Virus record (IMG/VR): IMGVR_UViG_3300044701_003953
Location: 62,001-126,000 of that record
Strand: one strand, 5' to 3'
Length of the DNA: 64,000 nucleotides
Positions 4,896 through 43,639 of this stretch are shown piece after piece. Numbering within the stretch: the first letter of the stretch is position 1; each line of letters opens with the position of its first letter. The translations under genes and the position numbers were made by a program. The notes under the pieces are model-generated. The model worked only from the letters and a program-made list of their open reading frames with translations. It was not told the DNA's origin and ran no database searches.

Positions 4896-6497
4896 TTACA
4901 CTAGTCCCAGTGCTTTCGCGACCTCGGGATGTGCTTTGGCAAAACTTTCTCCTCGCACAGAATCGAGTTGATTCATATAGTTGACGAATGGGATGTTTTC
5001 TGTATGCTTGGATTTTTCCAATATACCTAAAACTGTTTCGATGAAAGGTCGTGTGCGTTCGTTGAACGAATGGCTCTTAAGTTTTTCTATGCTGAGTTCG
5101 GCCGCTTTCTTTGGGATCTTTGACAAGCTCAGATGATCGGGGTTGTATAGTATGCTGAAGTATAGATCTTCGAATCCCGCACTCTCGATCCAATCACACA
5201 ATTCCGGGAGATAATGTACATTCATGACGCTTACTACACAATGTATGTTCAATATCACGTTATTGGTTTTATGTTCTTTGATGTATCGCACATTTTGTTC
5301 GACTGTGCTCCAACCAAATTTCTCGCCACCTGGGCGTTGTATATCGAATCGATCACCGATATCGTCGATACTGATAGCTAAGTCGATTTTTTTAAAGTGA
5401 CGCCATAGATCTAGTAGATGGTCATTGATGATCGAGCCATTGGTATTATAATGTATCGAAACATCGCCGGCGATATTCCGTTCTACCATCGATTCTAATG
5501 CTCGTAGATGATTCTTATCTAATAGCGGTTCGCCTCCGGCAAAGTCAAAATATTTTATCTGTGGGTTATCGATCACGCTATCCCATAGAGTCTGACCGTC
5601 ATGTATCCATTTGCCTTTTTCGATCGCTTGCCATGCTCGGTGTGTCTTTTTTTCTTTTGTAGACAAAGGTGCTAAAATCTCTCCAGCGATCTTGCTACTG
5701 CTTTTTTCGGAACAGATACGACATTTGAAATTACATACGTTCCCAAACGCCACAGAGACCATCTTGAGATTTTTTAGATCATCTTCTTCCCAATTGATAG
5801 ATCTGCTGTCGTCACCGAATCTTAAGGCATATAACTGTCTTTTACTGACAGCACCGCTTTCTTCCTCTTTCCAACAACGAGAACATGCTTGTAGTCTGAC
5901 ACCTTCGCGGAATAGTCTACGTAGCTTTTTCATGTAATTGCTATTATAGACTTCCTCCAATGAATCGACGGTTGGGTCAAACAAAGTACCGTTGTCTCTG
6001 GTGGCTCCGCCTTGATAAAAGCAACAAGGAGCGAATGTGCCGATTGGGCTGATATCTAGAGAATTCCAAGGCAAAGGGCACACAGTCGCTGGCATACCAA
6101 ACGCCGCACGACTTTCAGTTATTTCTGTGGGTTGATGGTGATTCCCGTCTGTCTGCTCATCGATGAGCACCGTGGGAGGTGAATCTACCCCGACCGCTTG
6201 GTAACATCGTGTCGCGATGTCGTGTTCCCTATCGCCGGGTAACACCAATACTATGAAAAAATTTGGGACATCGACGACTTTTAGTTGTTGGAAAAAGTCT
6301 TTGAAAAATCTTTCTAATAGATCGTCGCTGACAGTATCGCGGAGGTAAAACACCAGACGTTCATCGTCTCGGTACTCTTCTCTCTTCAGTGATTTGAGAT
6401 GTAGATAGAAATCGCCCCAAGACATAGAAAAGAAATCTCCGATGTCTTGGCATACGATGACAGAGTACTCTTCTTGTAGATTTTCTAATAGGGTCAT
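4896..6497 (-). CDS. radical SAM protein with N-terminal twitch-like domain and ~135-aa N-terminal extension
   Basis: VCPLPW...PCC...CSRC, then CNFKCRIC, GGEP, YNTNGS, ISIDD. Confidence 0.9.
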   Translation of the reverse strand: MTLLENLQEEYSVIVCQDIGDFFSMSWGDFYLHLKSLKREEYRDDERLVFYLRDTVSDDLLERFFKDFFQQLKVVDVPNFFIVLVLPGDREHDIATRCYQAVGVDSPPTVLIDEQTDGNHHQPTEITESRAAFGMPATVCPLPWNSLDISPIGTFAPCCFYQGGATRDNGTLFDPTVDSLEEVYNSNYMKKLRRLFREGVRLQACSRCWKEEESGAVSKRQLYALRFGDDSRSINWEEDDLKNLKMVSVAFGNVCNFKCRICSEKSSSKIAGEILAPLSTKEKKTHRAWQAIEKGKWIHDGQTLWDSVIDNPQIKYFDFAGGEPLLDKNHLRALESMVERNIAGDVSIHYNTNGSIINDHLLDLWRHFKKIDLAISIDDIGDRFDIQRPGGEKFGWSTVEQNVRYIKEHKTNNVILNIHCVVSVMNVHYLPELCDWIESAGFEDLYFSILYNPDHLSLSKIPKKAAELSIEKLKSHSFNERTRPFIETVLGILEKSKHTENIPFVNYMNQLDSVRGESFAKAHPEVAKALGLV

Positions 6498-7516: not shown

Positions 7517-8413
7517 TTATTCCTCTACCGGTGATCCACTACCACCGCCACCGCCCCAAGTAGTTCCTTGGGCCTGTCGTGTGTAGCTAGGGGTGAGTCC
7601 GTTCATTTCTAAGATGTCGTCGCGTAAGTTCTGATTACGTTTTTCGATGTTTAACACACGAGTGAAACTATTAGTGATAGCGGCAGTATAATACGCAAAA
7701 GGGTTCTGCGATTTTGATTCGTCAAATTGGAGTCCGATCTGGCTGAGCTGTAAGAGTGCTTGGCTTCGCATTTCGTCATTGTAAGTGTATCCTCTCCAGT
7801 TTGAACGCATGGCATAACGCTCACAGAGTTTTAAAAACATGTGTGCGAGTTTATTGGTCATCGCACCGTGGTCCCGGGAAAATTCGCCGGTGTCAAGGTC
7901 GCCCCGCCAGTGGCTTTTGCCCACGCAAAAAGGTTCCCCATCTTCTGTGACACGGAAATGCTGGAACGGCGGGAAATTGACTTTCATGTATTTGGTAGGG
8001 GCACCAGCGGCCGGCTCCTCTAGATCGTCGTACTCACTGAGCACCGGCTCTTCGTCAAATAGCAGGGGTGCTTTTTGGTTCTTGGGTTTCTTCTTGGATG
8101 TGTCAATAGGAATATGGTCCCAGGTCATCACACGGAACACTACGTCTGTGTCGGGTACGTCTTTGAGTTTGATCTCAAATTCATCCAATTTCCTTTTGAC
8201 ACCATCCACTGAAGCGGCTTCGTGGGCCAATTTGGCCAGGCGCTCGGCACGATTCCTCCGTGCTTCGAGTATGTTCTTTTTGTTTATCTTTTTGATATCT
8301 GGCAAGATCATGTCGTAATCCTTGTCGCTGGGATCACGGAAACTACAGTAAGTAGTCTTGCTCTTGTGTATTTCTTTAAGGATATCTTTGTTGTTAAGGT
8401 AATTGTGTTTCAT
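7517..8413 (-). CDS. gp55: late transcription sigma factor, T4 gp55-like, with internal insertion
   Basis: N-terminal HNYLNNKD and C-terminal NWRGYTYNDEM...FDESKSQNPFAYYT match gp55 motifs; gp55-gp47-gp46 synteny. Start moved to ATG 8413 (298 aa). Confidence 0.8.
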   Translation of the reverse strand: MKHNYLNNKDILKEIHKSKTTYCSFRDPSDKDYDMILPDIKKINKKNILEARRNRAERLAKLAHEAASVDGVKRKLDEFEIKLKDVPDTDVVFRVMTWDHIPIDTSKKKPKNQKAPLLFDEEPVLSEYDDLEEPAAGAPTKYMKVNFPPFQHFRVTEDGEPFCVGKSHWRGDLDTGEFSRDHGAMTNKLAHMFLKLCERYAMRSNWRGYTYNDEMRSQALLQLSQIGLQFDESKSQNPFAYYTAAITNSFTRVLNIEKRNQNLRDDILEMNGLTPSYTRQAQGTTWGGGGGSGSPVEE

Positions 8414-8438
8414 GGAGTTCCTATAATATGACCACTTT

Positions 8439-8467
8439 ATATTAAGCGATAAATATTCAAAAAGCAA
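8439..8467 (-). promoter_or_regulatory. putative sigma70-type promoter for the gp55-gp47-gp46 operon
   Basis: Minus strand TTGCTT (8467-8462), 17 nt, TAATAT (8444-8439), upstream of AGGA and ATG 8413. Confidence 0.4.
8448..8455 (+). promoter_or_regulatory. putative late promoter (GATAAATA)
   Basis: Resembles the T4 late promoter TATAAATA; sits upstream of the first structural gene; same core recurs before other structural genes. Confidence 0.6.
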
Positions 8468-8483
8468 GAGGAAATATCACCAA

Positions 8484-9359
8484 ATGGGTATCTTAGACAC
8501 GGTCAGTGGATTTTTTAATAAATCACCAAACACCACGCCAACCTTTGGCACCGAAGACTTTGTCCCCGGTGTGACCGACGCACAACCGTCGGGATTCAAG
8601 ATGCCCGGCATCGTTGATACCGCCCTAAACATATTTGATCCTAGTAATGCTCGGAGAACTATCTCGGGTTTGCTCAAAGGGGGCGCCTCGTCGAGACCTG
8701 CCATGAGTGTGGTCGGATTTAATAGCGCCGGTAGTGTAGGAGAAAGCGACTGGCGTGTTCGTATCAGCCTAGCTGACCAGTCCGATTACTTTTACAATGA
8801 TTCTATCAAAGGTGTCATGTCTCCGTTGTTTAATGGCACCGGCGAAAGTGGGGTAGTTTTTCCTTACACTCCTAGCATACAGGTACAACATACTGCTCGC
8901 TACGGAAATCAAAAACTCACACACAGTAATTATGACGCTTATTTCTACGAAGGGTCAGAAGTGCAAGCCATAACCATATCTGGAGAATTTACAGCACAAA
9001 ACGAACTAGAGGCAAGATATGTGTTGGCTACCATTTATTTTTTCCGGGCCTGTACTAAGATGTGGTTTGGACAGGGATCAAGAGCAGGTAATCCTCCTCC
9101 TGTGGTCTATCTTGACGGATACGGAGATCATTACTTTCCGCATGTGTCTTGCGTAATAACAAACTTTTCGCACACAATGCCGCAGGACACCGACTATATC
9201 GAAACATATCCTATGCCCGGACAAAAAACACGGATTCCAACCACTAGCACGGTATCGGTGACCTTACAGCCTGTGGTCAGTCGACGTAAAGCAATCGGGT
9301 TTGATCTTGATGAGTTTGCCCGAGGCGATTTATTAAAAGGACGAGGGGGTTTCCTGTAA
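8484..9359 (+). CDS. baseplate/tail tube initiator-like structural protein
   Basis: FPYTP..., AITISGEF, GNPPPVVYLDGYG, CVITNFSHTMP pattern typical of tube-initiator (gp48/gp54/gpU-like) proteins; first gene of the baseplate cluster. Confidence 0.6.
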   Translation: MGILDTVSGFFNKSPNTTPTFGTEDFVPGVTDAQPSGFKMPGIVDTALNIFDPSNARRTISGLLKGGASSRPAMSVVGFNSAGSVGESDWRVRISLADQSDYFYNDSIKGVMSPLFNGTGESGVVFPYTPSIQVQHTARYGNQKLTHSNYDAYFYEGSEVQAITISGEFTAQNELEARYVLATIYFFRACTKMWFGQGSRAGNPPPVVYLDGYGDHYFPHVSCVITNFSHTMPQDTDYIETYPMPGQKTRIPTTSTVSVTLQPVVSRRKAIGFDLDEFARGDLLKGRGGFL

Positions 9360-9362
9360 GCC

Positions 9363-9662
9363 ATGGCCACTTATAACAAAAATAGTCCATACTATGATAC
9401 TAAAATCTACAGCGGATTTTTAGATATCATGCAGACTCGCACATTCCGTAAGCTGGCATCCGATGTAGTCTATCGTATAGATCGCATCTATCAATATCGT
9501 CCCGATTTGCTGGCACATGATATCTATGGCGACTCGGGCCTTTGGTGGGTTTTCTCTGCACGAAACCCCAATGTAATCAAAGATCCTGTGTTTGATTTCC
9601 GTCCAGGTGTGTCTATATACATTCCCAAGAAAGAAACACTGATCGCAGACCTGGGGCTCTAG
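9363..9662 (+). CDS. baseplate wedge subunit, gp53-like (LysM-like)
   Basis: RPDLLAHDIYGDSGLWWVF..RN motif; position. Confidence 0.75.
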   Translation: MATYNKNSPYYDTKIYSGFLDIMQTRTFRKLASDVVYRIDRIYQYRPDLLAHDIYGDSGLWWVFSARNPNVIKDPVFDFRPGVSIYIPKKETLIADLGL

Positions 9663-9665
9663 TAG

Positions 9666-12600
9666 ATGGCCTACGATCCAAAAAAAGCCGCGGCCTTTAA
9701 TGCAGCCATTTCCCAAGGCCTCAGCGAAGACGAAGCACTAAAAACGGCTGGCATCAGCGACAATGAGGTTAGTAATTATTCCATCGACGAAGTTGGAAGC
9801 CAAAATCCCCAAGACCGTGACTACAACCCTAACTATGGTCAATTAACAAACTCCAGCATAGCCAGCCCGGTTAATACCGGAGGGACTCTTGTTACTACTC
9901 GGCCCGAAACGGTTGGCCCCACAGCCAGCGGGACTCCTTTGTCGGGAGTACCCACCGATGGTATACAAAACAGCAGCAATCGAGAACTCACACTGACTAG
10001 TACGCGACGAGCCGATCGAGAAGCCCAAGAAAGGGCCGCGGCCGAAGCAGCACAATCAGCCAATACAGCCACCGCACAAGAAAAACAATCAGCATCATCA
10101 GAAACGGCTGCAGATATAGTCAAGTCTGAAGAAAGAACAGACTTTACCGGCACCGATACACCAGTGGATGAGGAGGCCGGCGAGGAGGATGTACTTAGCG
10201 AAGAAGAACAGCAAAATCTTGATAACCCCACTGATTTTGAGTCCTTTGGCGAACAAACTGATCCCGGGGAAGCTACAGATACTCTGAGCTCGATAACTAG
10301 CAATGATCCCGGAGAATCACCTGATACCACAGAAAGTCTTGCTTCAATAACCGGCGAGGATCCTGGTTATGTGCCCGGCGAGACAGAAACTTTGCCTGAG
10401 GTAGTAGTAACAGCTAGTCGCATACCTTCCTATGTACCAGTGGAAAATCCTTTGCACGACTATGCCACTTATACCTACAACATCAGTTTGTTTGCCCTCA
10501 GCAGCGACGAATACAATCAAGCAGTAACAAACGAAGTTCGCTGGGATCGTGTTGGAAAATGTTTGATAGGTGGCGCCGGCAGATTCAATGATAACTCTAG
10601 TCGCCATCCTGCTTTCCGAGACGATTTTTACTTTGACGGTCTGAGACTTAATACTATAGTGGGCATGAACGCTAGAACTAAGGCTAGTAACGCCATAGAA
10701 ATCACATTTAATATCGTTGAGCCGTACGGCCTCACTTTGCTGGATCGTATCATTGATCTCGCCGCCACAATCAAACCATCTTGCAGGAACTATCTTGAAT
10801 TGCCTTATGCTTTGCGTATAGATTTTTTTGGCGCTACCGATGAAGGGGAAATGCCAAATCCTATACCTAATATGACCAAGTGGTTCCCGGTCAAGCTTCT
10901 AGAACTAAAGATGAAAGTGGGGACCAAAGGCACAGAATATTCTATCCGAGCCGTGCCCTACAATCATCAGGCACTCCAAGAAAGTACTGCTACCACTCCT
11001 ATTAATCTCGAAATAGATGCCAAAACAGTACAAGATTTCTTTGACGAAGGAGAAGCTGTCGTAGCCGAAACCGACGAGTTAGCAGCCTTTCGTGAAGCAG
11101 TTAAGCTAGATACAGTAAGAAACGATTCCGAGGCACTCCAGGCCTATCAAGCCCGCATCAAAGAATTAGAAAAAGGACTCAAGGTCAAATCTTCTAGTTA
11201 TACAGCCGGGGTCAATGCATGGTACCAATATCAAATTGAAACCGGTGCGAGAGAGTATACCGACCGTATAAGATTCGTAGTCGACAAAGAAATAGCCGAC
11301 TCTGCGATCGTGTTGCCAGATCGTACAGACCCCAGCAAGACTCCTGTTCCCGATCCTGGCACAGCCAAATCACGAGTGGCTAATGCACCAAACGCAGTCG
11401 GTCCAGATTTTAAAGCCACGGCTTTCAGTGTTAGTGCCGGCACCTCTGTACCTAGATTAGTTGACATGGTTATGCGGAACAGCAGTTATATACTGGATCA
11501 AGTTTCGGACCCGGCTACTAAGAGCCCCGAAGAAATAGCTAACAAGCGTGGTAAGCCCTTAAACTGGTACAAGATCATCCCTTCCATTAAACTAGATAAG
11601 TTTGATATAAAAACAAATCGTTGGGCCAGGACTATAACCTATCATATCAAACCCTATGTAGTTTACAACAGCAAGCATCCAATGGGTCCACAGAGTCGCC
11701 CTGAGGGGTTTGTGAAGATCTACAATTACATGTATACTGGACTCAACAGTGATATAATCGACTTCTCTATCGATTTTGACACTCTTTTCTACACAGCCAT
11801 CGAAGTCAACAGAGCAAGTTATCAGACCACTTCGGGTGCAGCTCGTACTACTACGCAGAATAAACCCAACGAAGTAGAAAATCCCAGCCAGGCTGGATCA
11901 ATCCAGCAGGTACAATATCTTCCTATCCCCGACAATCCTGGTGCCAGCGCAGCATTAGATGGCAACAGAGATCCTACTACCAAGACTGCCGCCAGTATAC
12001 AGAACAGTATCTATTCGGGTGCCCGAGGCGATATGTTGAACCTCAGATTAAAGATCATCGGAGATCCACATTTTATCAAACAGGACGACGTGTTGATCAA
12101 TCCAGCAGATCCCGAGTACGATGCTAAAATTTTCAATCAATTTAGTGAAAATGGCAGCTTGATCATGGATGCCGGCGAAATCTATGCTAGAGTCAATTTC
12201 CGCACTCCAGTTGACATCGACGACAAAACAGGATTAGTAAGATCTGATGGCAGGTACGTTGAAAGCAAATTTTCGGGACTTTATCGTATATTAAAAGTTG
12301 AAAGCGAATTCCGTTCGGGGCGATTTGAGCAAACCCTCGACATGATCAGGATATTTGATGACATATTAGAAGCAGCCACCACTGAAGATTCTCGCGAGAT
12401 AGAAGAAGATCCTGAAGGCGGAGCCGTTAGCGTCGACGTCGCCGGCGAAAATAGTTCAGGCGTAGTAGTCGAAGACACATCAGATGATGAAAATCAACAA
12501 GATGACGATCCAGCAGACACAAACACCAACGGGTGGGGCGAAGAAAATGAACCGTGGGATCCTGATTCGGAGTCCGCGCCGCCATCGGATTTTGACGAAG

Positions 12601-13031
12601 ACCCCGATCTAGAAGATATATCAGATCAAGACGAGGACATTGACATCGAAGACGATCGCGACGAAATGTCGTTAGAACCAGAGTCTTTCCCGGTGACGTC
12701 TTTTAGTCAACAAGAACAAATACAGGCGCAGGCAGATATCAATCCCGGGGTCAATGATCCGGTGACGGGCCCGGTGACTACCAATTCCGAAATAACTCAA
12801 ACAGTTTCTACTGTAGAAACTACTGGCGGTGGTGTCACTACACGAACAGCAGATACTTCGCCACCTCCGCAGACACAAGAGCAGTTGACTAAAGATCTCG
12901 AGTACGACATCATGTCAACTAAGAGAAGTCTTTCTTTCTATGAGCGTCGTGGAAACACCGCTAAAGTAGCAGAACTCAATTCAAAATTGTCCTCACTAGA
13001 ATCACAACTGGCGTCGGCACAAGGAAATTAA
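9666..13031 (+). CDS. baseplate hub-like structural protein with long acidic, low-complexity N- and C-terminal arms
   Basis: Between gp53-like and gp5-like genes; core ends in LRLKIIGDPHFI...FSGLYRILKVESEFRSGRFEQTL, typical of hub (gp27-like) proteins. Confidence 0.6.
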   Translation: MAYDPKKAAAFNAAISQGLSEDEALKTAGISDNEVSNYSIDEVGSQNPQDRDYNPNYGQLTNSSIASPVNTGGTLVTTRPETVGPTASGTPLSGVPTDGIQNSSNRELTLTSTRRADREAQERAAAEAAQSANTATAQEKQSASSETAADIVKSEERTDFTGTDTPVDEEAGEEDVLSEEEQQNLDNPTDFESFGEQTDPGEATDTLSSITSNDPGESPDTTESLASITGEDPGYVPGETETLPEVVVTASRIPSYVPVENPLHDYATYTYNISLFALSSDEYNQAVTNEVRWDRVGKCLIGGAGRFNDNSSRHPAFRDDFYFDGLRLNTIVGMNARTKASNAIEITFNIVEPYGLTLLDRIIDLAATIKPSCRNYLELPYALRIDFFGATDEGEMPNPIPNMTKWFPVKLLELKMKVGTKGTEYSIRAVPYNHQALQESTATTPINLEIDAKTVQDFFDEGEAVVAETDELAAFREAVKLDTVRNDSEALQAYQARIKELEKGLKVKSSSYTAGVNAWYQYQIETGAREYTDRIRFVVDKEIADSAIVLPDRTDPSKTPVPDPGTAKSRVANAPNAVGPDFKATAFSVSAGTSVPRLVDMVMRNSSYILDQVSDPATKSPEEIANKRGKPLNWYKIIPSIKLDKFDIKTNRWARTITYHIKPYVVYNSKHPMGPQSRPEGFVKIYNYMYTGLNSDIIDFSIDFDTLFYTAIEVNRASYQTTSGAARTTTQNKPNEVENPSQAGSIQQVQYLPIPDNPGASAALDGNRDPTTKTAASIQNSIYSGARGDMLNLRLKIIGDPHFIKQDDVLINPADPEYDAKIFNQFSENGSLIMDAGEIYARVNFRTPVDIDDKTGLVRSDGRYVESKFSGLYRILKVESEFRSGRFEQTLDMIRIFDDILEAATTEDSREIEEDPEGGAVSVDVAGENSSGVVVEDTSDDENQQDDDPADTNTNGWGEENEPWDPDSESAPPSDFDEDPDLEDISDQDEDIDIEDDRDEMSLEPESFPVTSFSQQEQIQAQADINPGVNDPVTGPVTTNSEITQTVSTVETTGGGVTTRTADTSPPPQTQEQLTKDLEYDIMSTKRSLSFYERRGNTAKVAELNSKLSSLESQLASAQGN

Positions 13032-13054: not shown

Positions 13055-15175
13055 ATGTCTACTGATCGACGATTAGGAAACAAACTACCATATTGGGCCG
13101 ATAAAAATACCTCTACGGGTATCAAACTTGATCCGGGTCCGTTCGTTGGAGTTATAAAAAATAACGTGGATCCCACCAATAGTGGGCGTCTGCAAGTATA
13201 CATACCCGATCTGGGTGGCGACGAAAACAATGTACAAAATTGGCGCACTGTGGTCTACGCCAGTCCTTTCTTTGGCGCGACCAATCAGCCCGAAGCTACA
13301 AAAAATACTGAATTTGAAAAAGTCCTGCATACCTACGGTATGTGGATGGTACCGCCCGATGTGGGTAACGAAGTCTTGTGTACATTCGTCAACGGAGACC
13401 CCGGCCGGGGTTACTGGTTCGCTTGCGTTAATAAAAATCTCAGTCACGTCATGCTACCGGCCATTGGAACTTCTGGCCCATTTGATACAGATCGAGTCAA
13501 GAGTGAAAAAGTAAAAAATTCTCTGGCACAGAAATTCAGTCCGGTGCTCCCCGCGGCAGAATTCAATGAAAACGATCCAGCCAACATCACCGACTCATAT
13601 AGATCCAATAAAAAAGCCATCCATGAGTATCAAGCTGAGGTATTGATCGATCAAGGGCTCGACAAAGACCCCACACGTGGTGCCATAACGTCGTCGAGCC
13701 AGAGAGAAACTCCCAGCCAGGTATTTGGTATATCTACCCCGGGACGCCCTATCAATGACCCCGCCGACGATCCTAACTATGGTTTCTTGTTAGCATCGGG
13801 AGAGATTGAAGAAGAAAAATATGCAGTAAGAAGTCGAAAAGGTGGTCATAGTTTTGTTATGGACGATGGCGCCATTGACAGTGGCCGGGACCAATTGATA
13901 CGATTGCGTACCGCAGGTGGGCACCAGATACTCATGCATGATACAGATCGTATCCTATATGTGGCCAACAGCGACGGATCCGTATGGATGGAATTTACTG
14001 GATCGGGTCATCTTAACGTCTATTCGGCCGGTGGCATCAATATACGGACTGAAGGTGACCTCAACATGCATTCGGCAGGAAATATGAGATTTCATTCTGA
14101 GGGATCCTTTAATGTTCGGGCCAACAAAGGAATAAATCTCGACACAAGCAATTTAGTCCTTAAGGCGAGCGAGGACATTACCAGTTATGCAGTAGGTAAA
14201 ATCAAGATTGGCAGTGCCGGTGATATTGTGTTGGATGCCGGCAGCAAAGGAGAATTTACTAGCCAGGGCGATATGAGGTTTCAGGGATCTAGGATTGATC
14301 TCAATAACGGACCCGGACAAAAAGTCAACGATCCTGGCAATATACCTCTTTTATTACACCCTGACGTTGTGAGGGAAAGTGAATTGCACCCTTGGATATC
14401 TAAAGCCAATCAAGTCACTTCTATTGCCACGATTGCCCCTGGACACGAGCCATGGCCTAGGAACAAAGGTTATCAACAGAAACAACCAACACAAGGTGGT
14501 GAAAACATTGCTGCTCAACCTGCGCCATCAAAGGCGCCCGAGCCTCCTGGGACTTATTCACGTGACCCAGGCCCGGATGGTGCGCTAGGCAAAGCTCCAT
14601 TAAAACCAATTGATCCAAGTTGGCTAGATCGACCCGACGCACCTAATCCACCGGGCGGTGTGGGCAATCTCAGTCAATTTGAGACCAAGGCCCTTATGGC
14701 GCAGATCGCTTACAGTGAAAGTTCGTGGAATTATCGTGCCAAAAACAGCCTTAACTATGTAGGAAGATATCAGACTGGTGCCGCAGTGCTTTCCGATCAG
14801 GGTTATATCAAACAAGAATTTTACAAGCAATATCGTAACGGAGCAGTCAATTACCCTTCTGCATGGACTGGCAAAGATGGTATCAATAGCTTAGATGACT
14901 ATTTCAACAACAAAGGCGTACAAGAGAGAGTAATGTATGAGCTTATGCAAAGCAACTATAAAACCATGGTCAGGATAGGCGCTATAAAAAGTGGCGATGA
15001 CAAACAGACCGTGGCTGGGATGTTGCAGGTGGCGCATTTGTTAGGTGCCGGCGGAGCAAAAACTTGGCGTAATACTGGCGGCGGTGCTGATGCAAATGGT
15101 ACGTCAGGAGAAGCATATTTTAATAAGGGTCGTTATGCAGTAAACACACTAGCCGGCGGTTCTGCCGCGGCGTAA
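13055..15175 (+). CDS. baseplate central spike, gp5/VgrG-like, with C-terminal lysozyme-like domain
   Basis: OB-fold motifs (NNVDPTNSGRLQVYIP, GMWMVPPDVGNEVLCTF), beta-helix region (GHSFVMDD, IRLRTAGGHQILMHD), Pro-rich linker, C-terminal SESSWNY...GRYQ...AHLLGAGG. Confidence 0.82.
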   Translation: MSTDRRLGNKLPYWADKNTSTGIKLDPGPFVGVIKNNVDPTNSGRLQVYIPDLGGDENNVQNWRTVVYASPFFGATNQPEATKNTEFEKVLHTYGMWMVPPDVGNEVLCTFVNGDPGRGYWFACVNKNLSHVMLPAIGTSGPFDTDRVKSEKVKNSLAQKFSPVLPAAEFNENDPANITDSYRSNKKAIHEYQAEVLIDQGLDKDPTRGAITSSSQRETPSQVFGISTPGRPINDPADDPNYGFLLASGEIEEEKYAVRSRKGGHSFVMDDGAIDSGRDQLIRLRTAGGHQILMHDTDRILYVANSDGSVWMEFTGSGHLNVYSAGGINIRTEGDLNMHSAGNMRFHSEGSFNVRANKGINLDTSNLVLKASEDITSYAVGKIKIGSAGDIVLDAGSKGEFTSQGDMRFQGSRIDLNNGPGQKVNDPGNIPLLLHPDVVRESELHPWISKANQVTSIATIAPGHEPWPRNKGYQQKQPTQGGENIAAQPAPSKAPEPPGTYSRDPGPDGALGKAPLKPIDPSWLDRPDAPNPPGGVGNLSQFETKALMAQIAYSESSWNYRAKNSLNYVGRYQTGAAVLSDQGYIKQEFYKQYRNGAVNYPSAWTGKDGINSLDDYFNNKGVQERVMYELMQSNYKTMVRIGAIKSGDDKQTVAGMLQVAHLLGAGGAKTWRNTGGGADANGTSGEAYFNKGRYAVNTLAGGSAAA

Positions 15176-15185: not shown

Positions 15186-15563
15186 ATGCCAATACTTTAT
15201 CGTGGATTCAGCACACAAACTAACAGCAAAAAGTTTCGCCTCGCGGACTTTGATTTAGTGAGACAAGACCTCATCAATCACTTCGGTATACGAAAAGGGG
15301 AAAAGTTGATGAACCCCGAGTTTGGGACCATAATATGGAATATGCTGTTTGATCCACTGACACCAGAGGTCAGAAAAGTCATTATCGACGACATCAAACA
15401 AATCATTGGATATGATCCACGACTAGCGGTAGACCAAGTGATACTCGATGAGTATGAACATGGATTGCAAATAGAAATCGACCTTAGATACGTGACCACA
15501 GACCAACGAAACATCCTGAAATTAAGGTTTGATCGAGAGCGACAAACCATGATGGCAGCTTAA
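15186..15563 (+). CDS. gp25: baseplate wedge subunit gp25-like
   Basis: LINHFGIRKGEKLMNPEFGTIIWNMLFDP...YDPRL; directly before the gp6-like gene. Confidence 0.88.
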   Translation: MPILYRGFSTQTNSKKFRLADFDLVRQDLINHFGIRKGEKLMNPEFGTIIWNMLFDPLTPEVRKVIIDDIKQIIGYDPRLAVDQVILDEYEHGLQIEIDLRYVTTDQRNILKLRFDRERQTMMAA

Positions 15564-15610: not shown

Positions 15611-18600
15611 ATGGCGCTGACTACAAGACAAACCAATTTACTCGTCCAGCAAGACTGGACTAAGATCTATCAGACCTTCAAAGAAGCTGACTTCCAGAGT
15701 TACGACTTTGAAACTCTGCGCAAGACGATGATCGATTACTTGCGCACTTATTACCCTGAAGATTTCAACGACTTCATTGAAAGTTCAGAATATATAGCTC
15801 TGATCGACCTGATAGCATTCCTAGGTCAAAGCCTGGCGTTCCGTGCCGACCTGAATGCTCGAGAAAATTTTATCGACACGGCTGAGCGCAGAGATAGCGT
15901 CCTGAAATTGGCACGCATGATCAACTATACGCCCAAACGTAATATTCCTGCGTCGGGCTTGTTGAAAATCGATTCTATATCAACTACTGAAAGCGTCACT
16001 GACAGCAACGGCATTAATCTTGCTAATCTTATCATTTCCTGGAATGATTCTACCAATGACAATTGGCAAGAACAATTTAATGCAATCATGAATTCGGCTC
16101 TGGTCAACAGCCAAATCATTGGCAAGCCCGGTAATACACAACTCATTAACAATATACGAACAGATGAATATTCTGTTAGCATCGAGCCCGGGGTGGTACC
16201 AATCTATAGATTTACCTCAACAGTAGAAGGCGCTTCGATGAATTTTGAAGCGGTATCGGCTACTACCGCAGGTCAGGCCTATATCTATGAGATTGAACCA
16301 AAACCTTCGTCAAAATTTAACGTACTTTACCGCAACGACAATCTAGGAAATTCTTCGAATAGCACTGGCTACTTTGTTTACTTTAAACAAGGGCAGATTT
16401 CTAGCGCCGATTTTTCTGTCAATGAAAGCCTACCTAATCGTGTAGTGGCCATGAACTTTGACAATATCAACAACAATGATGTCTGGTTATATAGCGTAAG
16501 CAGCCAGGGAATCTTGTCAACATCATGGAAACGTATTCCTGCGGTAGCCGGCATCAATGTAGTTTATAATAAAAGCGAAGATCGTAATCTTTATCAAGTC
16601 AACAGCCGTGTCAGTGATCAAGTTGACCTTGTGTTTGGTGACGGTGCATTTGCTAACATACCTCGCGGAAATTTCCGTTTTTATTATCGCCAGAGCAATG
16701 GCCTTACTTACAAAATTACTCCCGACGAAATGCAAAACATCTCGATACCTATCGAGTATGTGAGCCGCAAAGGTCGTACGGAAACACTGACACTTCGGGT
16801 AAGCCTGAACTATACCATAGCTAATGCTACCGCTCGAGAAACCCTCGACGAAATACGAACGAAAGCACCTCAACAGTTCTACACGCAGAACCGTATGATC
16901 ACCGGCGAAGACTACAACATCTTCCCATACACAGCCTTTTCTACTGTACTCAAGGCCAAAGCAGTGAACCGCACCAGTTCCGGAGTGAGTCGATTCCTTG
17001 ATGTACTTGATGTTACCGGCAAATACAGTTCCACAAATATCTATGCCAGCGACGGCATAATATATCGAGATGAATATGTAAAGAGTTTACAGTTTGACTA
17101 TCAAACCGACAATGAAATTTATTCAGTGGTCTACAATCAAATCAATCCTATAATTTCAGGCAAGAGCATGCAGCATTTCCATTATTCTCAAGTGAAGAGA
17201 TTGCCGATATCAGGCGTCACATGGAAATCTCTGCGCATCGCTACCAATGCCAATGTTGGTCAGTTAGTCGACGAGAATGGCGATGCTGTTTCTTCTGGGA
17301 CAACTGCATCTGATAATAAAAGATACATAGTCCCTTATGCGATGTTGAGATTTTCGGCCGGCCCCGGAAAATATTTTACTGGCAGCGGAAAGATAGTCTC
17401 GGGACAGCCTACAAAAGACAGTGATCGTCGCTACATCTATGCCGCTGTCATCACCAGCGACATCGATAGTAAACAGTTGACTCTTAATCAGTTAGTTCCA
17501 ACTGGAGCTATTGTTGACGAAATCATACCGGTATTTAAAAATTCCATCAGCGACGATTTTGTAAAAACCGTTGTTGGATATATCAAGGTCTACAAAGACT
17601 TTGGTCTGAGATACGACATAGAAACCGCGAGTTGGAAAATCATCGAAAAAGAGTATCTAGGCGGCGAGGAGTATTCGGACGAGTATGCCGGGTCAACAAA
17701 TCCAGGGTCCGACAGTAGTTGGCTAGTTAAGTTCCGATACAACGGAAATCAGTATGTGGTTGATTATCGTGGTTTAGATTACTACTTTGAAAGCGTGACC
17801 GAAACTAAATTTTATTTTGACGATCGCTTAAAAATATTTGACAGCAAGACCGGCAGAACTGTCAATGACTATATCAATGTGCTAAGATTTAATACCGAAC
17901 CCGATAGTTCGTTGCCATTGACTAACAATTTAATTTGGTATGTTTATAAAAATGTTGTTGAGCCCGACGGTTATGTCAACAATAATAAAATACTTCTGAC
18001 TTTCCCTGATTCTGACAACGACGGAGTACCCGACAATCCTGATCTCTTTGAACTAATCGTGTCACCCGAGGTTAACCCCACAGAAAAGCTCGTTTATTTC
18101 CAAGTTGATTCGTCTTCAAATTCGTTCGTTGAGTATCATGCCATTGATGGCTCCAATATTGTTTCTCAATATTCTGTGCGCAATGAAATTTTAGATAACT
18201 TAAATTCTTACGCTGTTGGGCAAGTATTTTATGCTTATCAAGAAAAAAGATTTTATTTTTATAGTCCTGTCCTATTCCGATTAGTTGAGACAACAGATTA
18301 TCTTGCCAAGCAAGGAAGATCGGGAATTAATTTTCAGTATAGACACAATAGCCCTAACCAGCGCCGGATCGATCCAAGTCCCAATAATATCATGGACTTG
18401 TTTATCTTGACGAAAACTTATACCACAGATTATCTTGCTTGGATCAAGGATACATCAAATACCGTAGAAGAACCAACGGAGCCTACAAGCGAAGAACTCA
18501 AGTTGGAGTATGGTATCCTTGAAAATTACAAAGCAATGAGCGACACGATCATTTATAACTCGGCAAAATTTAAACCAATCTTTGGAAGCCGTGCTGAGTC

Positions 18601-18961
18601 TAATCTGCGTGCCAAATTTAAAGTGGTTAAAAACCCCAATCTACTCATTAGCGACAGCGATATCAAAACATCATTGATCGCGGCCGTAAATTCTTATTTT
18701 GATGTCAACAACTGGGACTTCGGCGAAACATTTTATTTCTCTGAGCTCAGCGCATATCTACACAATCGTCTTAGCCCCGACATAGCGTCGGTAATCATCG
18801 TGTCTGAGAATAGTAATATTCCATTTGGGAACCTTTATCAAATCAACGCCGAGCCAGACGAAATTATTATTTCTGCCGCCACCGTCAATGATGTTGAAAT
18901 TATTTCGTCGATTACCGCTTCACAAATCAACCAGATTTCTGCAGGCTTAAATATTACATAA
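15611..18961 (+). CDS. gp6: baseplate wedge subunit gp6-like (extended, 1116 aa)
   Basis: DFETLRKTMIDYL, ENFIDTAERRDSVLKLARMINYTP, FGDG, ETLDEIRTKAP...QNRMITGEDY, C-terminal DFGETFYFSEL. Confidence 0.88.
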   Translation: MALTTRQTNLLVQQDWTKIYQTFKEADFQSYDFETLRKTMIDYLRTYYPEDFNDFIESSEYIALIDLIAFLGQSLAFRADLNARENFIDTAERRDSVLKLARMINYTPKRNIPASGLLKIDSISTTESVTDSNGINLANLIISWNDSTNDNWQEQFNAIMNSALVNSQIIGKPGNTQLINNIRTDEYSVSIEPGVVPIYRFTSTVEGASMNFEAVSATTAGQAYIYEIEPKPSSKFNVLYRNDNLGNSSNSTGYFVYFKQGQISSADFSVNESLPNRVVAMNFDNINNNDVWLYSVSSQGILSTSWKRIPAVAGINVVYNKSEDRNLYQVNSRVSDQVDLVFGDGAFANIPRGNFRFYYRQSNGLTYKITPDEMQNISIPIEYVSRKGRTETLTLRVSLNYTIANATARETLDEIRTKAPQQFYTQNRMITGEDYNIFPYTAFSTVLKAKAVNRTSSGVSRFLDVLDVTGKYSSTNIYASDGIIYRDEYVKSLQFDYQTDNEIYSVVYNQINPIISGKSMQHFHYSQVKRLPISGVTWKSLRIATNANVGQLVDENGDAVSSGTTASDNKRYIVPYAMLRFSAGPGKYFTGSGKIVSGQPTKDSDRRYIYAAVITSDIDSKQLTLNQLVPTGAIVDEIIPVFKNSISDDFVKTVVGYIKVYKDFGLRYDIETASWKIIEKEYLGGEEYSDEYAGSTNPGSDSSWLVKFRYNGNQYVVDYRGLDYYFESVTETKFYFDDRLKIFDSKTGRTVNDYINVLRFNTEPDSSLPLTNNLIWYVYKNVVEPDGYVNNNKILLTFPDSDNDGVPDNPDLFELIVSPEVNPTEKLVYFQVDSSSNSFVEYHAIDGSNIVSQYSVRNEILDNLNSYAVGQVFYAYQEKRFYFYSPVLFRLVETTDYLAKQGRSGINFQYRHNSPNQRRIDPSPNNIMDLFILTKTYTTDYLAWIKDTSNTVEEPTEPTSEELKLEYGILENYKAMSDTIIYNSAKFKPIFGSRAESNLRAKFKVVKNPNLLISDSDIKTSLIAAVNSYFDVNNWDFGETFYFSELSAYLHNRLSPDIASVIIVSENSNIPFGNLYQINAEPDEIIISAATVNDVEIISSITASQINQISAGLNIT

Positions 18962-18975
18962 ACATTGGGTGACAC

Positions 18976-21900
18976 ATGGCATCGTCTAAGACTTTGAATT
19001 TTTTACCAGAGATTTTTCGCACTGATGCGAACAAAAAATTCTTGTCGGCTACCGTCGATCAGCTGATCAGCGAACCTAATTTCAAAAGAATAAATGGTTA
19101 CATCGGAAGACGTGTTGCCCCAACATTTAAACCTTCTGACAATTACATTTTAGAAGATGACAAGGCTCGACAGAATTATCAACTTGAGCCTTGTGTAGTA
19201 TCACAAAATTCCTTTACTGATAAGATTGAATTTTTTTCATCCTACAGAGATCTCCTGCAAAAGATATCTTATTACGGTGGGAATGTATCAGATCATAATC
19301 GCCTTTTTGAAAACGAATACTACACCTTCGATGGATGTTTTGATCTCGACAAATTTATCAACTTCAACAATTACTATTGGGTTCCTGAGGGACCCGAAGC
19401 TGTTGATATTTTTGCTGGCGAAGTAGACAGCGAAGGTGAATACACTGTCACACGCAACATAGCATCGAATGGTCTCACTTTCAGTGGTCGTGGACAAGAA
19501 GTCAACCCAACATTGACTCTTGCTCGTGGCGGAACTTATGTATTCCGTTTAGATCAGCCAGGTCGTAAGTTCTGGATACAAACAGAGCCCGGCGTCAATG
19601 GAGTCAAATCAGCACAAGCAAATATCTCTACTAGAGAAGTGGTGGGGGTTATCAATAACGGAAACGATCAAGGAACAGTGACGTTCCGTGTTCCTTTGTC
19701 AACTGCTCAAGAGAGATTTACATCAATGACGTTGGCCGCGGTTTCGGACTTTGCGGTCGAAACCAAATACGTCGACATACACAATCACGGTCTACGAGAG
19801 TTTATAAAAACAAATCCCAAAGGATTTGATGGATACCGAGACCCCATTGACATTGATGGAAAATATTTAATTTTTATCAACCAAGACGATAGCGATGTAT
19901 CGTGGACCAACGACGAAATATTTGATTATCATCCCTATGATATAGTAGTCACCGAAACAGTCCCACCGGCGATTAGAAGAAATCTCTGGAGGATACAACT
20001 GGTGCCTAGCGATAACGATTATATAATTAATCTGGTCCCAGCTACTGGTATTTTGCCCAACCAAAAAGTTTTTATTAGAAAAGGCATCGATAATGCCACA
20101 CAGGAATTCTTTATTGACTATGATGGGTTCTACAAGAGAGTTCCTATAATAACGGCTAACCTAGACCGGCTCTATTATCAAGACGAATCGGATCCCAGCT
20201 TTGTTGGAGAGATAAGATTAGTCGACGCTGGTAATGTTTTCATTAATGTTGAAACAGATATCGTTGGGAAAATAAACTATACCAGCCCCAATGGCGTAAT
20301 TTTTACCAACGGTCTGAAAGTCAGATTTAATTCACAAGTAAATCCTGAAAAATATCGTCAACGAGAATACTACATCGAAGGAGTTGGCAAAGCCATACAA
20401 CTGATAGACGTATCCTTGTTAGTCAACCCGGGATATTTTGACGAGCAATTAAAAAATCTAGATTACATAACGATCAACCGGGGAAGTACCGATCTCAATG
20501 CATGGACACGCAGTAATCGTTGGTTCCATATCGATGTACTTAAATCGGCCGCGGCCTATAATAAAACTGTCGATCTACCCGACAACCAATATCGAGCCAA
20601 GCGACCCATCATTGAGTTTGAACCAAATCTCCAACTCTACAACTTCGGGCGCGAAGGTTTAGGCAAAGTCGATTATCTAGATTTTTACATCGACGATGCG
20701 TTTTCGCAAGTTGAAGGATTTGGTAAACCCTATGATTCGTTAGAGCATTATGCTAAGGATGATGTGGTACTAGTAGCGAACCAAGTGTACCGTGCCAAGA
20801 TTGACTTACAGCAACCGCCCGATAATACCAGTAACTGGCAGGATTATGGATTCGTATATGATTTTGAATTGACACGAGTTTATACTATCGGTCAGCTAAC
20901 GAAATATCAGAACGCCATCTATCGAGCCATTGGTACTACCGCAGAAAATTTACCTACGAACATCAGTTACTGGACGCCGGTCGCCTACGACAGAAATTCT
21001 GCTGTCGTTTTTAACACTGATACCAGCTATCAAATTGGTGATTTAGTTTCGTTTGAAAACAAATATTATATTTGTACCTCTGCCGCTCAAGGTATATCTC
21101 CCGCTGAGTCGGAACTAACATGGAGTCTCTCAGACACTTACGTAGATTATGATGTTGCTATCGCTAACACCATACTCAAAGGCCAGTATTCTATCTACCA
21201 AGGAAGATTGTATCTTGCACTAATGAATATTGTGCAACCACCAATTGGTAATGCCTACTGGGAAGAAATATTAGAAATACAAGATGGCAAAACAGTAATT
21301 TTCGCCGGTGATCAAGATACGCAGATACGCAATTCTATCTATGTCATGACTATGGAAGAAATTGGCGGAGTCGAAGTGCCACACCTTACACCGATCCTAG
21401 AGTCGGGGATAAAGCAGTATCATACCGTGGCAATCAGTTCTGGCGAGAACCGTGGTAAAAATTTCTGGTATGATGGAACAAGCTGGCATCAAGGCAAGAT
21501 CAAAACATCAGTGAATCAAACACCGTTGTTCGAAGTGATTGATCACGATGGTATCAGTTTTGGCGATACTGAAAGATATTACAATTCTAACTTTGTTGGA
21601 ACACCTATCTTTTCCTATAAGCAAGGAACAGGTAAAAATGACACCATCCTTGGGTATCCACTCAGTTACAGAAATTTTGGCAATGTCGGGGACATTGAGT
21701 TCAGCAATGATTTTAATAATTCGGTAGTGACATACCTTGAAGGCACTAAAGAACTAACTAAGAAAATTGATCTCGGGTATCTTATTTCTTATTCGGATCG
21801 AGAAAATATCTCTCTGAAAAATGTTTGGAAAAAAGCCAGCGAGAAATCTCATCAGTATCAGATAATTTCTCATGTATTTGACGGAACTACTAATTATTTT

Positions 21901-42726: not shown

Positions 42727-43639
42727 TGTCGCAGACATAGATTGCATCTATCTCAGTTACGACGAGCCACAGAAGGAAGCGTTCTGGATCAAGATACAGA
42801 ACATGGTACCCTGGGCCAAGCGAGTGGATGGCGTCAAAGGATCCGACGCCGCACACAAGGCCGCCGCTGCCAAGTCTGACACAGAATTTTTCGTGCTCAT
42901 TGACGGAGACAACTTGCCCGACGGTGACTTCTTTAATCTACAACTGGCAGTAGGCGAAGACGAAGCTGATGCTGCCTGGCGCTGGAAAGCCCGCAATCAC
43001 ATCAACGGACTCATGTATGGCAACGGTGGCATGAGTGTGTGGAGCAAGCGGTTTGTGGAAGACATGAAAACCCACGAAGCATCGGATGGCAGCGATCGCA
43101 CAGCAGTGGAGTTCTGTTTCGAACCCAAATACTTTGCCATGCACAACTGCTACTCGACCACTTACCCCAATGGTAGCCCTTACCAAGCATGGCGTGCTGG
43201 ATTCCGTGAAGGCGTCAAGATGTGTCTGGACAAAGGCCGCAAGCCCACGCTACAAGAGTTTGATGACTCAGTGCAACGGCGCAACTTTGACAACCTCTGC
43301 ATCTGGCAGACCGTGGGTCGTGATGTAGAAAACGGTATATGGGCCATCGCAGGAGCACGCCTAGGTACCACTATGACAATGATACATGATTGGGATCACA
43401 GGAACGTACAAGACTTTGATGAGCTTAAAAAGATCTGGGAAGATTGCGTCAAAGATCTAGATCCCGAAGAATTAGCTGCCAAAGAAGGGCAACTGTTACG
43501 CAGTCGACTAGGTATGCCCATCGCAGAGTTTGACGCAGAGCAAAGCAAATTTTTTAAACATCATTACTCTACGGGGCACAAGAACCTAGACATGATGACC
43601 AAAGAGATCGATGTGATCCGTCGTATCGAAGGATGGTGA
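42707..43639 (+). CDS. putative glycosyltransferase (GT-A-like, SYDEP type)
   Basis: DCIYLSYDEP, KRVDGVKG...AHKAAA, FVLIDGDN (DxD), INGLMYGNGG, AWRAGFREGVK; GGAG upstream of ATG 42707. Confidence 0.6.
   Translation: MASRIIDVADIDCIYLSYDEPQKEAFWIKIQNMVPWAKRVDGVKGSDAAHKAAAAKSDTEFFVLIDGDNLPDGDFFNLQLAVGEDEADAAWRWKARNHINGLMYGNGGMSVWSKRFVEDMKTHEASDGSDRTAVEFCFEPKYFAMHNCYSTTYPNGSPYQAWRAGFREGVKMCLDKGRKPTLQEFDDSVQRRNFDNLCIWQTVGRDVENGIWAIAGARLGTTMTMIHDWDHRNVQDFDELKKIWEDCVKDLDPEELAAKEGQLLRSRLGMPIAEFDAEQSKFFKHHYSTGHKNLDMMTKEIDVIRRIEGW

Follow-up and report, generated by a model that had tools for sequence, protein, structure and literature searches.

A TonB-box-like motif beside the predicted central tail hub of a huge freshwater phage and its recurrence in other phage proteins

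Background

TonB-dependent transporters of the bacterial outer membrane, such as FhuA and BtuB, are gripped by the TonB motor through a short peptide, the TonB box, which is a flexible segment lying 10–20 residues before the first strand of a domain that plugs a channel. The box consists of an acidic or polar residue followed by a beta-strand run ending in V-[TS]-[AG], and its function depends on tonB, exbB, exbD and proton-motive force and is abolished by proline or charge substitutions in it. Some of these transporters, including FecA and FpvA, also have an N-terminal domain and linker before the box (PMC11658791). Group B colicins carry a TonB box of their own in a disordered N-terminal region in order to exploit the host Ton motor; they thread through a transporter or TolC after receptor binding, and they carry a toxic domain. 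Phage infection is also linked to the Ton system in the case of T1 and phi80, although in those phages the dependence is ascribed to the receptor FhuA. A comparable parasitism of the Tol system is seen in filamentous phages, in which a folded domain of the virion protein g3p binds TolA, a periplasm-spanning energy-transducing protein, to cross the envelope. In contractile tails, the central hub is represented by T4 gp27, Mu gp44, VgrG of the T6SS and the hubs of PVC and pyocins.

Here we examine a 64,000-nt stretch of DNA (the window; positions 62,001 to 126,000 of IMG/VR record IMGVR_UViG_3300044701_003953, from a freshwater metagenome) in which a peptide identical to a TonB box is encoded next to the fold of a putative baseplate hub. 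A sequence-only reading had proposed that residues 241–252 of this protein form a TonB-box-like motif where an acidic, low-complexity arm meets the folded core, and that a hub driven into the periplasm on tail contraction could engage host TonB to power or anchor injection, in a colicin-like mimicry.

Results

The hub gene and its neighbourhood

The motif lies in an ORF of 1121 aa (protein P0001) within a cluster of baseplate genes. The features of the region are as follows.

7517–8467 (-), gp55-like late sigma factor, marking the start of the conserved synteny block (phrog_12791, E 2.5e-82)
8484–9359 (+), virion structural protein of phrog_12050 (E 4e-42), judged by eye from its sequence to be tube cap/initiator (gp48/54)-like
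9363–9662 (+), gp53-like baseplate wedge protein, 99 aa (phrog_7145, E 8e-27; Pfam Phage_gp53)
9666–13031 (+), gene for the 1121-aa central baseplate hub protein (phrog_11190, "virion structural protein")
9666–9785 (+), residues 1–40, small, confidently predicted helical N-terminal domain
9786–10385 (+), residues 41–240, predicted disordered, acidic, low-complexity arm
10386–10421 (+), residues 241–252, ETLPEVVVTASR, the TonB-box-like motif
10422–10439 (+), residues 253–258, IPSYVP, a [VI]PxYxP element linking the motif to the core
10446–12365 (+), residues 261–900, predicted gp27/VgrG-type folded hub core
12366–12875 (+), residues 901–1070, second predicted disordered, very acidic arm at the C-terminal side
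12876–13028 (+), residues 1071–1121, confidently predicted C-terminal helical hairpin
13055–15175 (+), gp5-like spike with a lysozyme-like C-terminal part (phrog_27932 and phrog_13211, "baseplate hub subunit and tail lysozyme"; PF04717 OB domain)
15186–15563 (+), gp25-like wedge protein (PF04965; phrog_43 and phrog_261)
15611–18961 (+), gp6-like baseplate wedge protein, 1116 aa (phrog_10646, E 0; phrog_219)

The hub family comprises 3263 cluster representatives. The AlphaFold2 model of the core matches the gp27, VgrG and Mu gp44 hubs (Foldseek E 7e-9 to 2e-6, prob 1.0), with 52 PDB hits at E <= 1e-3 led by eCIS, PVC and AFP hubs, VgrG1, T4 gp27, Mu gp44 and the phiKZ central baseplate; these hits include 7b5h_AJ, 4mtk_A, 1k28_D, 1wru and 9xph_A. 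There is no detectable sequence similarity to gp27 families in Pfam. The core is about 640 residues, roughly twice the size of gp27, and the protein also has a 250-residue N-terminal arm and a 220-residue C-terminal arm, which the solved hubs lack. Phages PA5oct and Atu_ph07, cultured relatives with the same gene order, have hubs with no arms and no motif. The syntenic PA5oct homologue, gp349, is annotated as detected in virions by ESI-MS/MS.

The motif lies where the disordered arm meets the fold

The observation made from the sequence is correct: residue 241 starts at nt 10386, residues 241–252 read ETLPEVVVTASR, and ENPLHDYATYTY follows eight residues later. In the AlphaFold2 model, residues 1–40 have a pLDDT of 77–93 with helices at 5–16 and 21–28, while pLDDT is below 50 for residues 41–113, 130–177 and 187–250. 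The block 241–250 averages 43 and shows no secondary structure, the block 251–260, in which IPSYVP lies, averages 83, and the first core helix and strand run from 262 to 277. The motif is therefore predicted to be the end of a disordered arm and not a buried core strand, a possibility that would have counted against the proposal. The core is mostly at pLDDT 85–95, residues 903–1066 fall below 50, and the C-terminal helices at 1071–1095 and 1098–1120 reach 93–96. In the 207.5-kb genome record, the extended pattern (...[VI]T[AS]x[RK]) occurs in only one credible ORF, which is this one.

The octapeptide is a canonical TonB-box sequence

A DNA pattern for EVVVTAxR gave 120 stretches in bacterial genomes, of which 111 were open in frame, and in 85 of these a Plug domain of a TonB-dependent receptor (PF07715) follows immediately. 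Some of these transporters even have LP or MP in front of the box, as is the case here (hit L048, ELLPEVVVTAAR, and hits L017, L032 and L060; L numbers denote hits of the pattern scans). A hydrophobic residue at -2, which the pattern does not force, is shared by transporter and phage contexts (30 of 35 versus 39 of 74, with Leu in 25 of the 74). The contexts also differ, in that phage sequences have Pro at -1 (22 of 74, versus 2 of 35 in transporters) and at +7, and no Arg at +9. Unlike a transporter, the hub protein has no 22-strand barrel, signal peptide or Plug domain. A search of the phage record for PF07715 and PF03544 found neither and gave no transporter loci, and no TonB_C-like domain is encoded in the 59% of the phage genome examined.

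The motif in homologues

About 10% of 196 homologues carry a box-like motif. The five-residue core pattern occurs 19 times in the 40 residues before the core (7,840 aa), at -12 to -21 from the core anchor, and 21 times in the remaining 191,702 aa, giving an odds ratio of 22 and a Fisher p of 1e-16, although these homologues are related and so are not independent samples. Their flanks are unrelated (LPTVTVTASK, MPEVVVTASR, DEVVVTAKR, MGEITVTAKK, LQTVTITASR, LGTITVTASP), and the variant TITVTA is identical to the E. coli FhuA box. On a tree of 194 core sequences, the 22 rows that match a slightly looser pattern within 60 residues of the anchor need 17 state changes, the motif lying in lineages scattered over the tree. 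It recurs at one fixed slot in the otherwise unalignable arms of distant homologues. One homologue with only 25% identity aligns from exactly the motif onward, EDVGEIVVTAPR.

Among the aligned homologues P0002 to P0006, the N-terminal domain is conserved as MAYDPKKAAA... in P0002 and P0004–6, while the arm, in which Pfam finds no domain in P0001, diverges strongly among close relatives. P0001–4 keep LP[ED]VVVTA[SK]RIPxYVPV although the preceding 40 residues diverge, whereas P0005 and P0006 have homologous arms but read ...ASVKSKTIP and SVGSKTLP at that spot, so that the fold does not need the motif. The motif is absent from about 90% of homologues, including relatives 72–75% identical in the core, and is a patchy, labile feature rather than a family-wide one. 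The [VI]PxYxP element occurs at exactly -8 from the core anchor in 29 of 196 homologues, against 1 occurrence elsewhere in them. A different short motif, [QTKS][VI]G[GAN], is also enriched at the same slot in other lineages (odds ratio 8.8).

Pfam analysis of 150 N-terminal arms found almost no domains, with Phage_lysozyme2 in two; other annotations of the homologues add LysM, GH19 and two more lysozymes. The presence of LysM, phage tail lysozyme or GH19 domains on some homologues' arms suggests that these arms work in the periplasm. A profile of 21 motif segments searched against PDB sequences gave only weak beta-galactosidase hits (E about 0.1), but a 20-column profile is too short for HMMER and this search was uninformative.

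Recurrence in other phages

In other viral contigs, in-frame hits to EVVVTAxR and EIVVTAxR fall in proteins that enter the periplasm or line the tube. These are tape measures (L197, L171, L229, L194, L239, L349, L249 and L271), hubs (L146, L134 and L279), a gp5-like spike (L274), a gp48-like tube cap (L139), tube-like proteins (L155 and L169), a member of phrog_12050 carrying EIVVTASR (L277), a DNA-transfer/transglycosylase protein (L214) and lysins (L211, L173 and L258). Copies are often in tandem (three in L315 and L252, two in L336 and L309) and often lie in Pro/Ala/Thr-rich linkers. A permuted control peptide, TVEVAVxR, gave almost only wrong-frame artefacts, with no tail bias and no repeats. 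A tblastn search of GenBank phages with the L214, L250, L239 and L139 proteins found relatives in Gram-negative hosts, but the matches did not cover the motif segments, and no cultured test case was identified. In phage T1, a scan of the tail proteins and of the six-frame genome found no E. coli-type box, only an unrelated TSITA in the J-like protein.

Discussion

The ORF at 9666–13031 is best read as encoding the trimer-type central hub, equivalent to gp27, of a roughly 340-kb freshwater myovirus. Together with the gp5-like spike, this hub would close the tip of the tail tube and be driven through the outer membrane when the sheath contracts. The last residues of its flexible arm, about 15–20 residues before the first strand of the hub fold, read as a canonical TonB box (LPEVVVTASR). 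We propose, by inference, that once the hub is in the periplasm this exposed strand pairs with the C-terminal domain of host TonB by beta-augmentation, as the boxes of TonB-dependent transporters and group B colicins do. If so, the ExbBD-TonB motor, driven by proton-motive force, would anchor the tail tip to the inner-membrane side, or would pull on the hub and help dislodge this plug from the tube end so that the tape measure and DNA can exit. In this view the layout of N-domain, linker, TonB box, 10–20 residues and plug copies that of the transporters. Our analysis demonstrates the sequence identity with real TonB boxes, the predicted disorder and hub fold, the fixed slot, and the recurrence both in scattered lineages and in tail-tip and ejection proteins of other phages, while exposure of the arm (which may lie in the tube lumen or outside it) in the periplasm, binding to TonB and any use of force remain inferences. 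A single complex prediction of E. coli TonB residues 150–239 with P0001 residues 226–262 scored 0.02, below the mark, in a run without controls, and is taken as evidence neither for nor against binding. We found no literature on this. The interpretation offered from the sequence alone is thus supported only in part, its hub assignment, disordered position and box identity having held while the motif is not family-wide, and we favour a TonB-box mimic only tentatively. Against this reading stand the lack of the motif in about 90% of family members, the second motif enriched at the same slot, the differences between phage and transporter contexts, and the lack of an E. coli-type box in the tail proteins of T1, the classical TonB-dependent phage.

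Comparison with described systems places the box on the phage's own protein, rather than on a receptor as in T1 and phi80. The resemblance to colicins includes the colicin M box, ETLTV, which begins with the same ETL (PMC11658791), but here entry would be mechanical, by a contractile tail, and the box adjoins a structural hub. Pfam and PHROGs searches found no receptor-binding or toxin domain, so the protein may work like a colicin arm but is not a group B colicin or pyocin. In comparison with g3p, the motor would be Ton rather than Tol, and the proposed binder is a linear box rather than a folded domain, on a tailed rather than a non-tailed phage.

Two other explanations are unlikely but survive about equally well. 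The segment could be an assembly strand that adds to a beta-sheet of a neighbour in the virion, such as another hub subunit, the gp48/54-like tube cap, the tape measure or the gp5-like spike, its likeness to a TonB box reflecting only the general make-up of an edge strand. The fixed slot, the conserved [VI]PxYxP that follows it and the alternative motif at the same slot are consistent with a structural or assembly contact that tolerates several sequences, the octapeptide sits just before tube-fold domains in L139, L155, L169 and L146, and a monomer model cannot show inter-subunit strands. However, close relatives with homologous arms lack the motif, the hubs of isolates have no arm at all, the match to transporter boxes extends to the unforced -2 position, and folded contacts do not explain its occurrence in tape measures, a DNA-transfer protein and lysins, or as tandem copies in low-complexity linkers.

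Alternatively, the segment may be a functional short linear motif whose partner is not TonB but another periplasmic or envelope protein that binds extended strands, such as TolA or TolB, a chaperone or a protease, or a phage-encoded partner; it could equally act as a decoy that blocks TonB-dependent uptake or superinfection rather than as a handle for force. The evidence for selection (enrichment, recurrence and tandem copies) says nothing about the partner, phage contexts have their own flavour in the prolines at -1 and +7, and Ff phage g3p and group A colicins use TolA, whose C-terminal domain resembles that of TonB (PMC7391070). Against this, the only known binder of exactly this sequence class is TonB, the sequences are identical to working boxes, and no TonB_C-like domain was found in the part of the phage genome examined. 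Chance is very unlikely: although the motif is short, most homologues lack it and the sequence-only reading had many motifs to choose from, this is disfavoured by the 22-fold enrichment, the fixed position, the conservation in P0001–4 against diverged flanks, the recurrence at 25% identity and the different behaviour of the permuted control.

It is also possible, though less likely than not, that TonB-box mimicry is a general and so far undescribed strategy of tailed phages of Gram-negative bacteria, in which hubs, spikes, tube caps, tape measures, ejection proteins and virion lysins carry canonical boxes, often in tandem, in flexible linkers. The host's TonB-ExbBD motor would then grip these proteins in the periplasm and use proton-motive force to unplug the tail tube, or to pull the tape measure and ejection proteins towards the inner membrane.

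How a tail tip crosses the periplasm, how the hub-spike plug leaves the tube and why genome delivery often needs an energised membrane are long-standing gaps in phage biology. A TonB box on the hub, and on tape-measure and ejection proteins of many other phages, gives a concrete hypothesis, namely that the phage borrows the host's force-transducing motor as group B colicins do. If this is true, a new host factor for infection would be defined, as would a new route to phage resistance and its trade-offs with iron uptake, and a sequence marker would be available for proteins that phages deliver into the periplasm.

Identity of the gene product

The ORF that carries the motif lies on a 207.5-kb IMG/VR virus record judged to be about 59% complete, bases 62001-126000 of which form the window considered here, and the same gene is also found on a 338-kb JGI contig. 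Sequencing runs that hold the gene come from freshwater metagenomes. The ORF encodes 1121 residues, and residues 241-252 read ETLPEVVVTASR, with ENPLHDYATYTY following eight residues later; no alternative genetic code was used. The position and the reading of the motif given by the sequence-only reading, which had described a TonB-box-like peptide at the end of a disordered arm of a baseplate hub-like protein, are therefore correct. The features of the region considered here are as follows.

4896-6497 (-) and 43633-51282 (+): seven paralogous radical-SAM-like ORFs
8484-9359: phrog_12050 structural protein
9666-13031 (+): the 1121-residue protein, designated P0001
9666-9785: residues 1-40, small helical module predicted at the N-terminus
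10386-10421: residues 241-252, the TonB-box-like motif
12876-13028: helical hairpin predicted at the C-terminus
18976-33126 (+): 4716-aa virion protein

Sequence libraries identify P0001 only as a "virion structural protein" (phrog_11190), and a Pfam search returned no match. The family is large, with 3263 cluster representatives at E <= 1e-3, found mostly on contigs of up to 350 kb. An AlphaFold2 model built on 116 homologues shows a small, confidently predicted helical domain at residues 1-40, a largely disordered stretch at residues 41-250 (with pLDDT below 50 for 41-113, 130-177 and 187-250), a well-predicted core at about residues 251-900, a second disordered, acidic stretch at residues 903-1066 and a confidently predicted helical hairpin at residues 1071-1120. 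The two small helical modules at the extreme ends of the protein are each joined to the core by a long, acidic, disordered linker, and might dock on the tape measure or the tube. A Foldseek search against the PDB places the modelled core among central baseplate hubs, with hits to eCIS, PVC and AFP hubs, VgrG1, T4 gp27 (1k28_D), Mu gp44 (1wru), the pyocin R2 hub and the phiKZ central baseplate at E 7e-9 to 1e-5 and probability 1.0.

The gene order agrees with this identification. A late sigma factor on the minus strand is followed by the phrog_12050 structural protein, which we read by eye as gp48/54-like, a gp53-like wedge protein, the hub, a gp5-like spike and lysozyme, gp25-like and gp6-like wedge proteins, and a 4716-aa virion protein, then fibres. 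The 4716-aa protein is encoded by a single ORF that matches phrog_10938, "virion structural protein", and its residues 3773-3858 resemble the C-terminal part of gp5-type spikes. The same gene order occurs in the isolates PA5oct and Atu_ph07, and the PA5oct homologue of the hub is annotated as detected in virions by mass spectrometry. The designation "baseplate hub" is therefore right. Elsewhere in the region, six of the seven radical-SAM-like ORFs form a tight tandem array and the seventh lies beside the SbcCD genes, with pairwise identities of 20-37% (E 1e-5 to 5e-99).

Comparison of the motif with TonB boxes

In order to test whether the motif resembles a TonB box by sequence, we scanned one genome per prokaryotic species for DNA encoding E-V-V-V-T-A-x-R. 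Of a sample of 120 stretches, 111 were open for at least 60 codons downstream, and in 85 of these 111 a TonB-dependent-receptor Plug domain starts about 13 residues after the motif. The remainder were mostly wrong-frame hits in high-GC genomes, together with a few unrelated enzymes. Several of the transporters carry LP or MP before the box, as does P0001. E. coli FhuA reads EDTITVTAAPAPQ, and its box hexapeptide, TITVTA, is identical to the variant found in several homologues of this hub. A review states that the box binds TonB as a parallel strand on beta3, that activity depends more on local secondary structure than on individual side chains, and that colicin M carries its box (ETLTV) in an unstructured N-terminal domain (PMC11658791).

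In the AlphaFold2 model, residues 241-250 have a mean pLDDT of 43 and no secondary structure, while the mean for residues 251-260 rises to 83 and the first core helix and strand run from 262 to 277. The motif is therefore not predicted to be a buried core strand, an outcome that had been named beforehand as one that would count against the TonB-box reading, although a monomer model cannot exclude that the segment becomes ordered against a neighbour in the virion.

Conservation among hub homologues

Among the nearest relatives, P0001 to P0004 keep LP[ED]VVVTA[SK]RIPxYVPV exactly or nearly so, while the 40 residues before it diverge. P0005 and P0006 have clearly homologous arms but read ...QPASVKSKTIP and ...SVGSKTLP at that spot, and P0007 to P0009 read EVADQASSIP. 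The box is thus an island of conservation in some lineages, and the fold can do without it. Across 196 homologues with a recognisable core anchor, the five-residue core pattern occurs 19 times in the 40 residues before the core, every occurrence lying at -12 to -21, and 21 times in the other 191,702 residues (odds ratio 22, Fisher p 1e-16), though the sequences are related and this p-value overstates their independence. The flanks differ between lineages (LPTVTVTASK, MPEVVVTASR, DEVVVTAKR, MGEITVTAKK, LQTVTITASR, LGTITVTASP, LAPEVSVTAKR and LDDIDVTAARL). On a FastTree of 194 core sequences, the 22 rows that match a slightly looser pattern within 60 residues of the anchor need 17 changes of state, and the trait is therefore labile, or repeatedly gained, or moved by arm exchange. 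A homologue that was found independently on a viral contig (L279, 25% identity, E 7e-42) aligns with P0001 starting exactly at the motif, EDVGEIVVTAPR. About 90% of the members lack the motif, however, and the cultured relatives have no arms at all. Some homologues (P0059, P0094, P0096, P0118 and P0114) carry LysM, phage tail lysozyme (PF18013) or GH19 domains; PF18013 was confirmed within two N-terminal arms, while the positions of the LysM and GH19 domains come from whole-protein annotation only.

The same slot is also enriched for a second, different short motif, [QTKS][VI]G[GAN] (e.g. QVGGP, TIGGS and KVGAN), which lies at -13 to -16 from the core anchor (the equivalent of positions ~10395-10410) in about 11% of homologues that lack the TonB-box-like motif (22 against 61 occurrences, odds ratio 8.8 against the rest of the proteins). 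In addition, a [VI]PxYxP element sits at exactly -8 in 29 members. The arm-core junction is therefore a constrained slot that accepts alternative short motifs, which fits a slot for exchangeable partner-binding peptides but also fits a structural contact that tolerates several sequences.

Occurrence in other phage proteins

We also scanned IMG/VR contigs for EVVVTAxR (110 stretches) and for the independent variant EIVVTAxR (at least 119 stretches). After removal of wrong-frame hits and a few true transporters, the hits, designated by the prefix L, were classified with PHROGs.

Classes of viral-contig proteins carrying EVVVTAxR or EIVVTAxR
Tape-measure proteins: L197/L125, L171, L229, L194, L239/L292, L349/L242, L249/L306, L271/L266
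Hubs: L146 (phrog_196), and L134/L221 and L279 of the present family
gp5-like spike: L274
gp48-like tube cap: L139, with the motif at residue 18
Tube-like proteins: L155, L169
phrog_12050: L277, the same family as the gene at 8484-9359
DNA-transfer/transglycosylase protein: L214, with relatives in podophages of Shigella, Ralstonia, Pseudomonas and Roseobacter
Lysin-domain proteins: L211, L173, L258

Hits outside these classes were few. PHROGs assigned one portal protein (L136) and one baseplate wedge (J-like) protein (L176), and by eye we read a second portal protein (L151) and a DnaB-like helicase (L199). Some proteins carry two or three copies of the motif 13-20 residues apart in Pro/Thr/Ala-rich linkers (L315, L252/L310/L324, L336, L329 and L309). 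These include the proteins at L315:8287-12168 (-), L252:2105-3466 (-), L336:5742-8354 (+) and L309:2347-4443 (-), examples of the repeats being EIVVTADRPTSEIPEIVVTADRPVVNDAGEIVITADRP, and EIVVTAKRE...SLPEVKVTAQRETDSLPEVKVTGER. A 178-aa protein at L289:9519-10052 (+) and L312:6327-6860 (+) appears, by eye alone, to have a lipoprotein-type signal (...FTVSC), then EIVVTAQR, then what looks like a SleB-like cell-wall hydrolase, which would put a TonB-box-like motif on a secreted phage lysin. Contigs L236, L245, L246, L264, L273, L283, L319-L321, L325, L327 and L345, although filed as viral, appear by eye to carry one near-identical full-length TonB-dependent transporter (signal peptide, then EIVVTALRTPTNI...), which could be a phage-borne transporter gene or host DNA.

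A permuted control peptide, TVEVAVxR, gave almost only Arg-rich wrong-frame artefacts, with about six proteins that looked plausible, no tail bias and no repeats; the totals of two of the three scans are lower bounds, so the counts are only roughly comparable. Transporter and phage contexts share one unforced feature, a hydrophobic residue (mostly Leu) at -2, but differ at three positions: at -1 transporters favour Glu and phages favour Pro, at +7 phages favour Pro, and at +9 transporters have Arg, which belongs to the plug.

Possible role of the motif

TonB-box parasitism itself is established for group B colicins and pyocins. A full-text literature search, in a collection that does not cover all journals, found no paper describing TonB boxes in phage tail, tape-measure or ejection proteins.

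The sequence-only reading had suggested that the hub could engage host TonB to power or anchor injection, and our results support this suggestion in part. The analysis itself shows a sequence identical to that of true TonB boxes in a segment predicted to be flexible, while the further steps, that the segment is exposed in the periplasm, binds TonB there and transmits force, are inferences. Other possibilities remain, namely that the segment is an assembly strand, or that it serves another partner or a decoy function; chance is the least likely of these alternatives.

All the phage protein classes that carry the box either plug or line the tail tube, or are expelled through it, and these would be the proteins that reach the periplasm first. 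The only known reader of this exact sequence class is the TonB C-terminal domain. The predicted architecture of the hub mirrors that of a transporter with an N-terminal extension, with a small N-domain, a long linker, the box, 15-20 residues, and then the first strand of the domain that closes the tube. In transporters, TonB pulls on the box to unplug the barrel. We therefore consider a TonB-box mimic to be the best explanation, though only tentatively, and such a mimic would let the host Ton motor anchor the hub or help to remove it.
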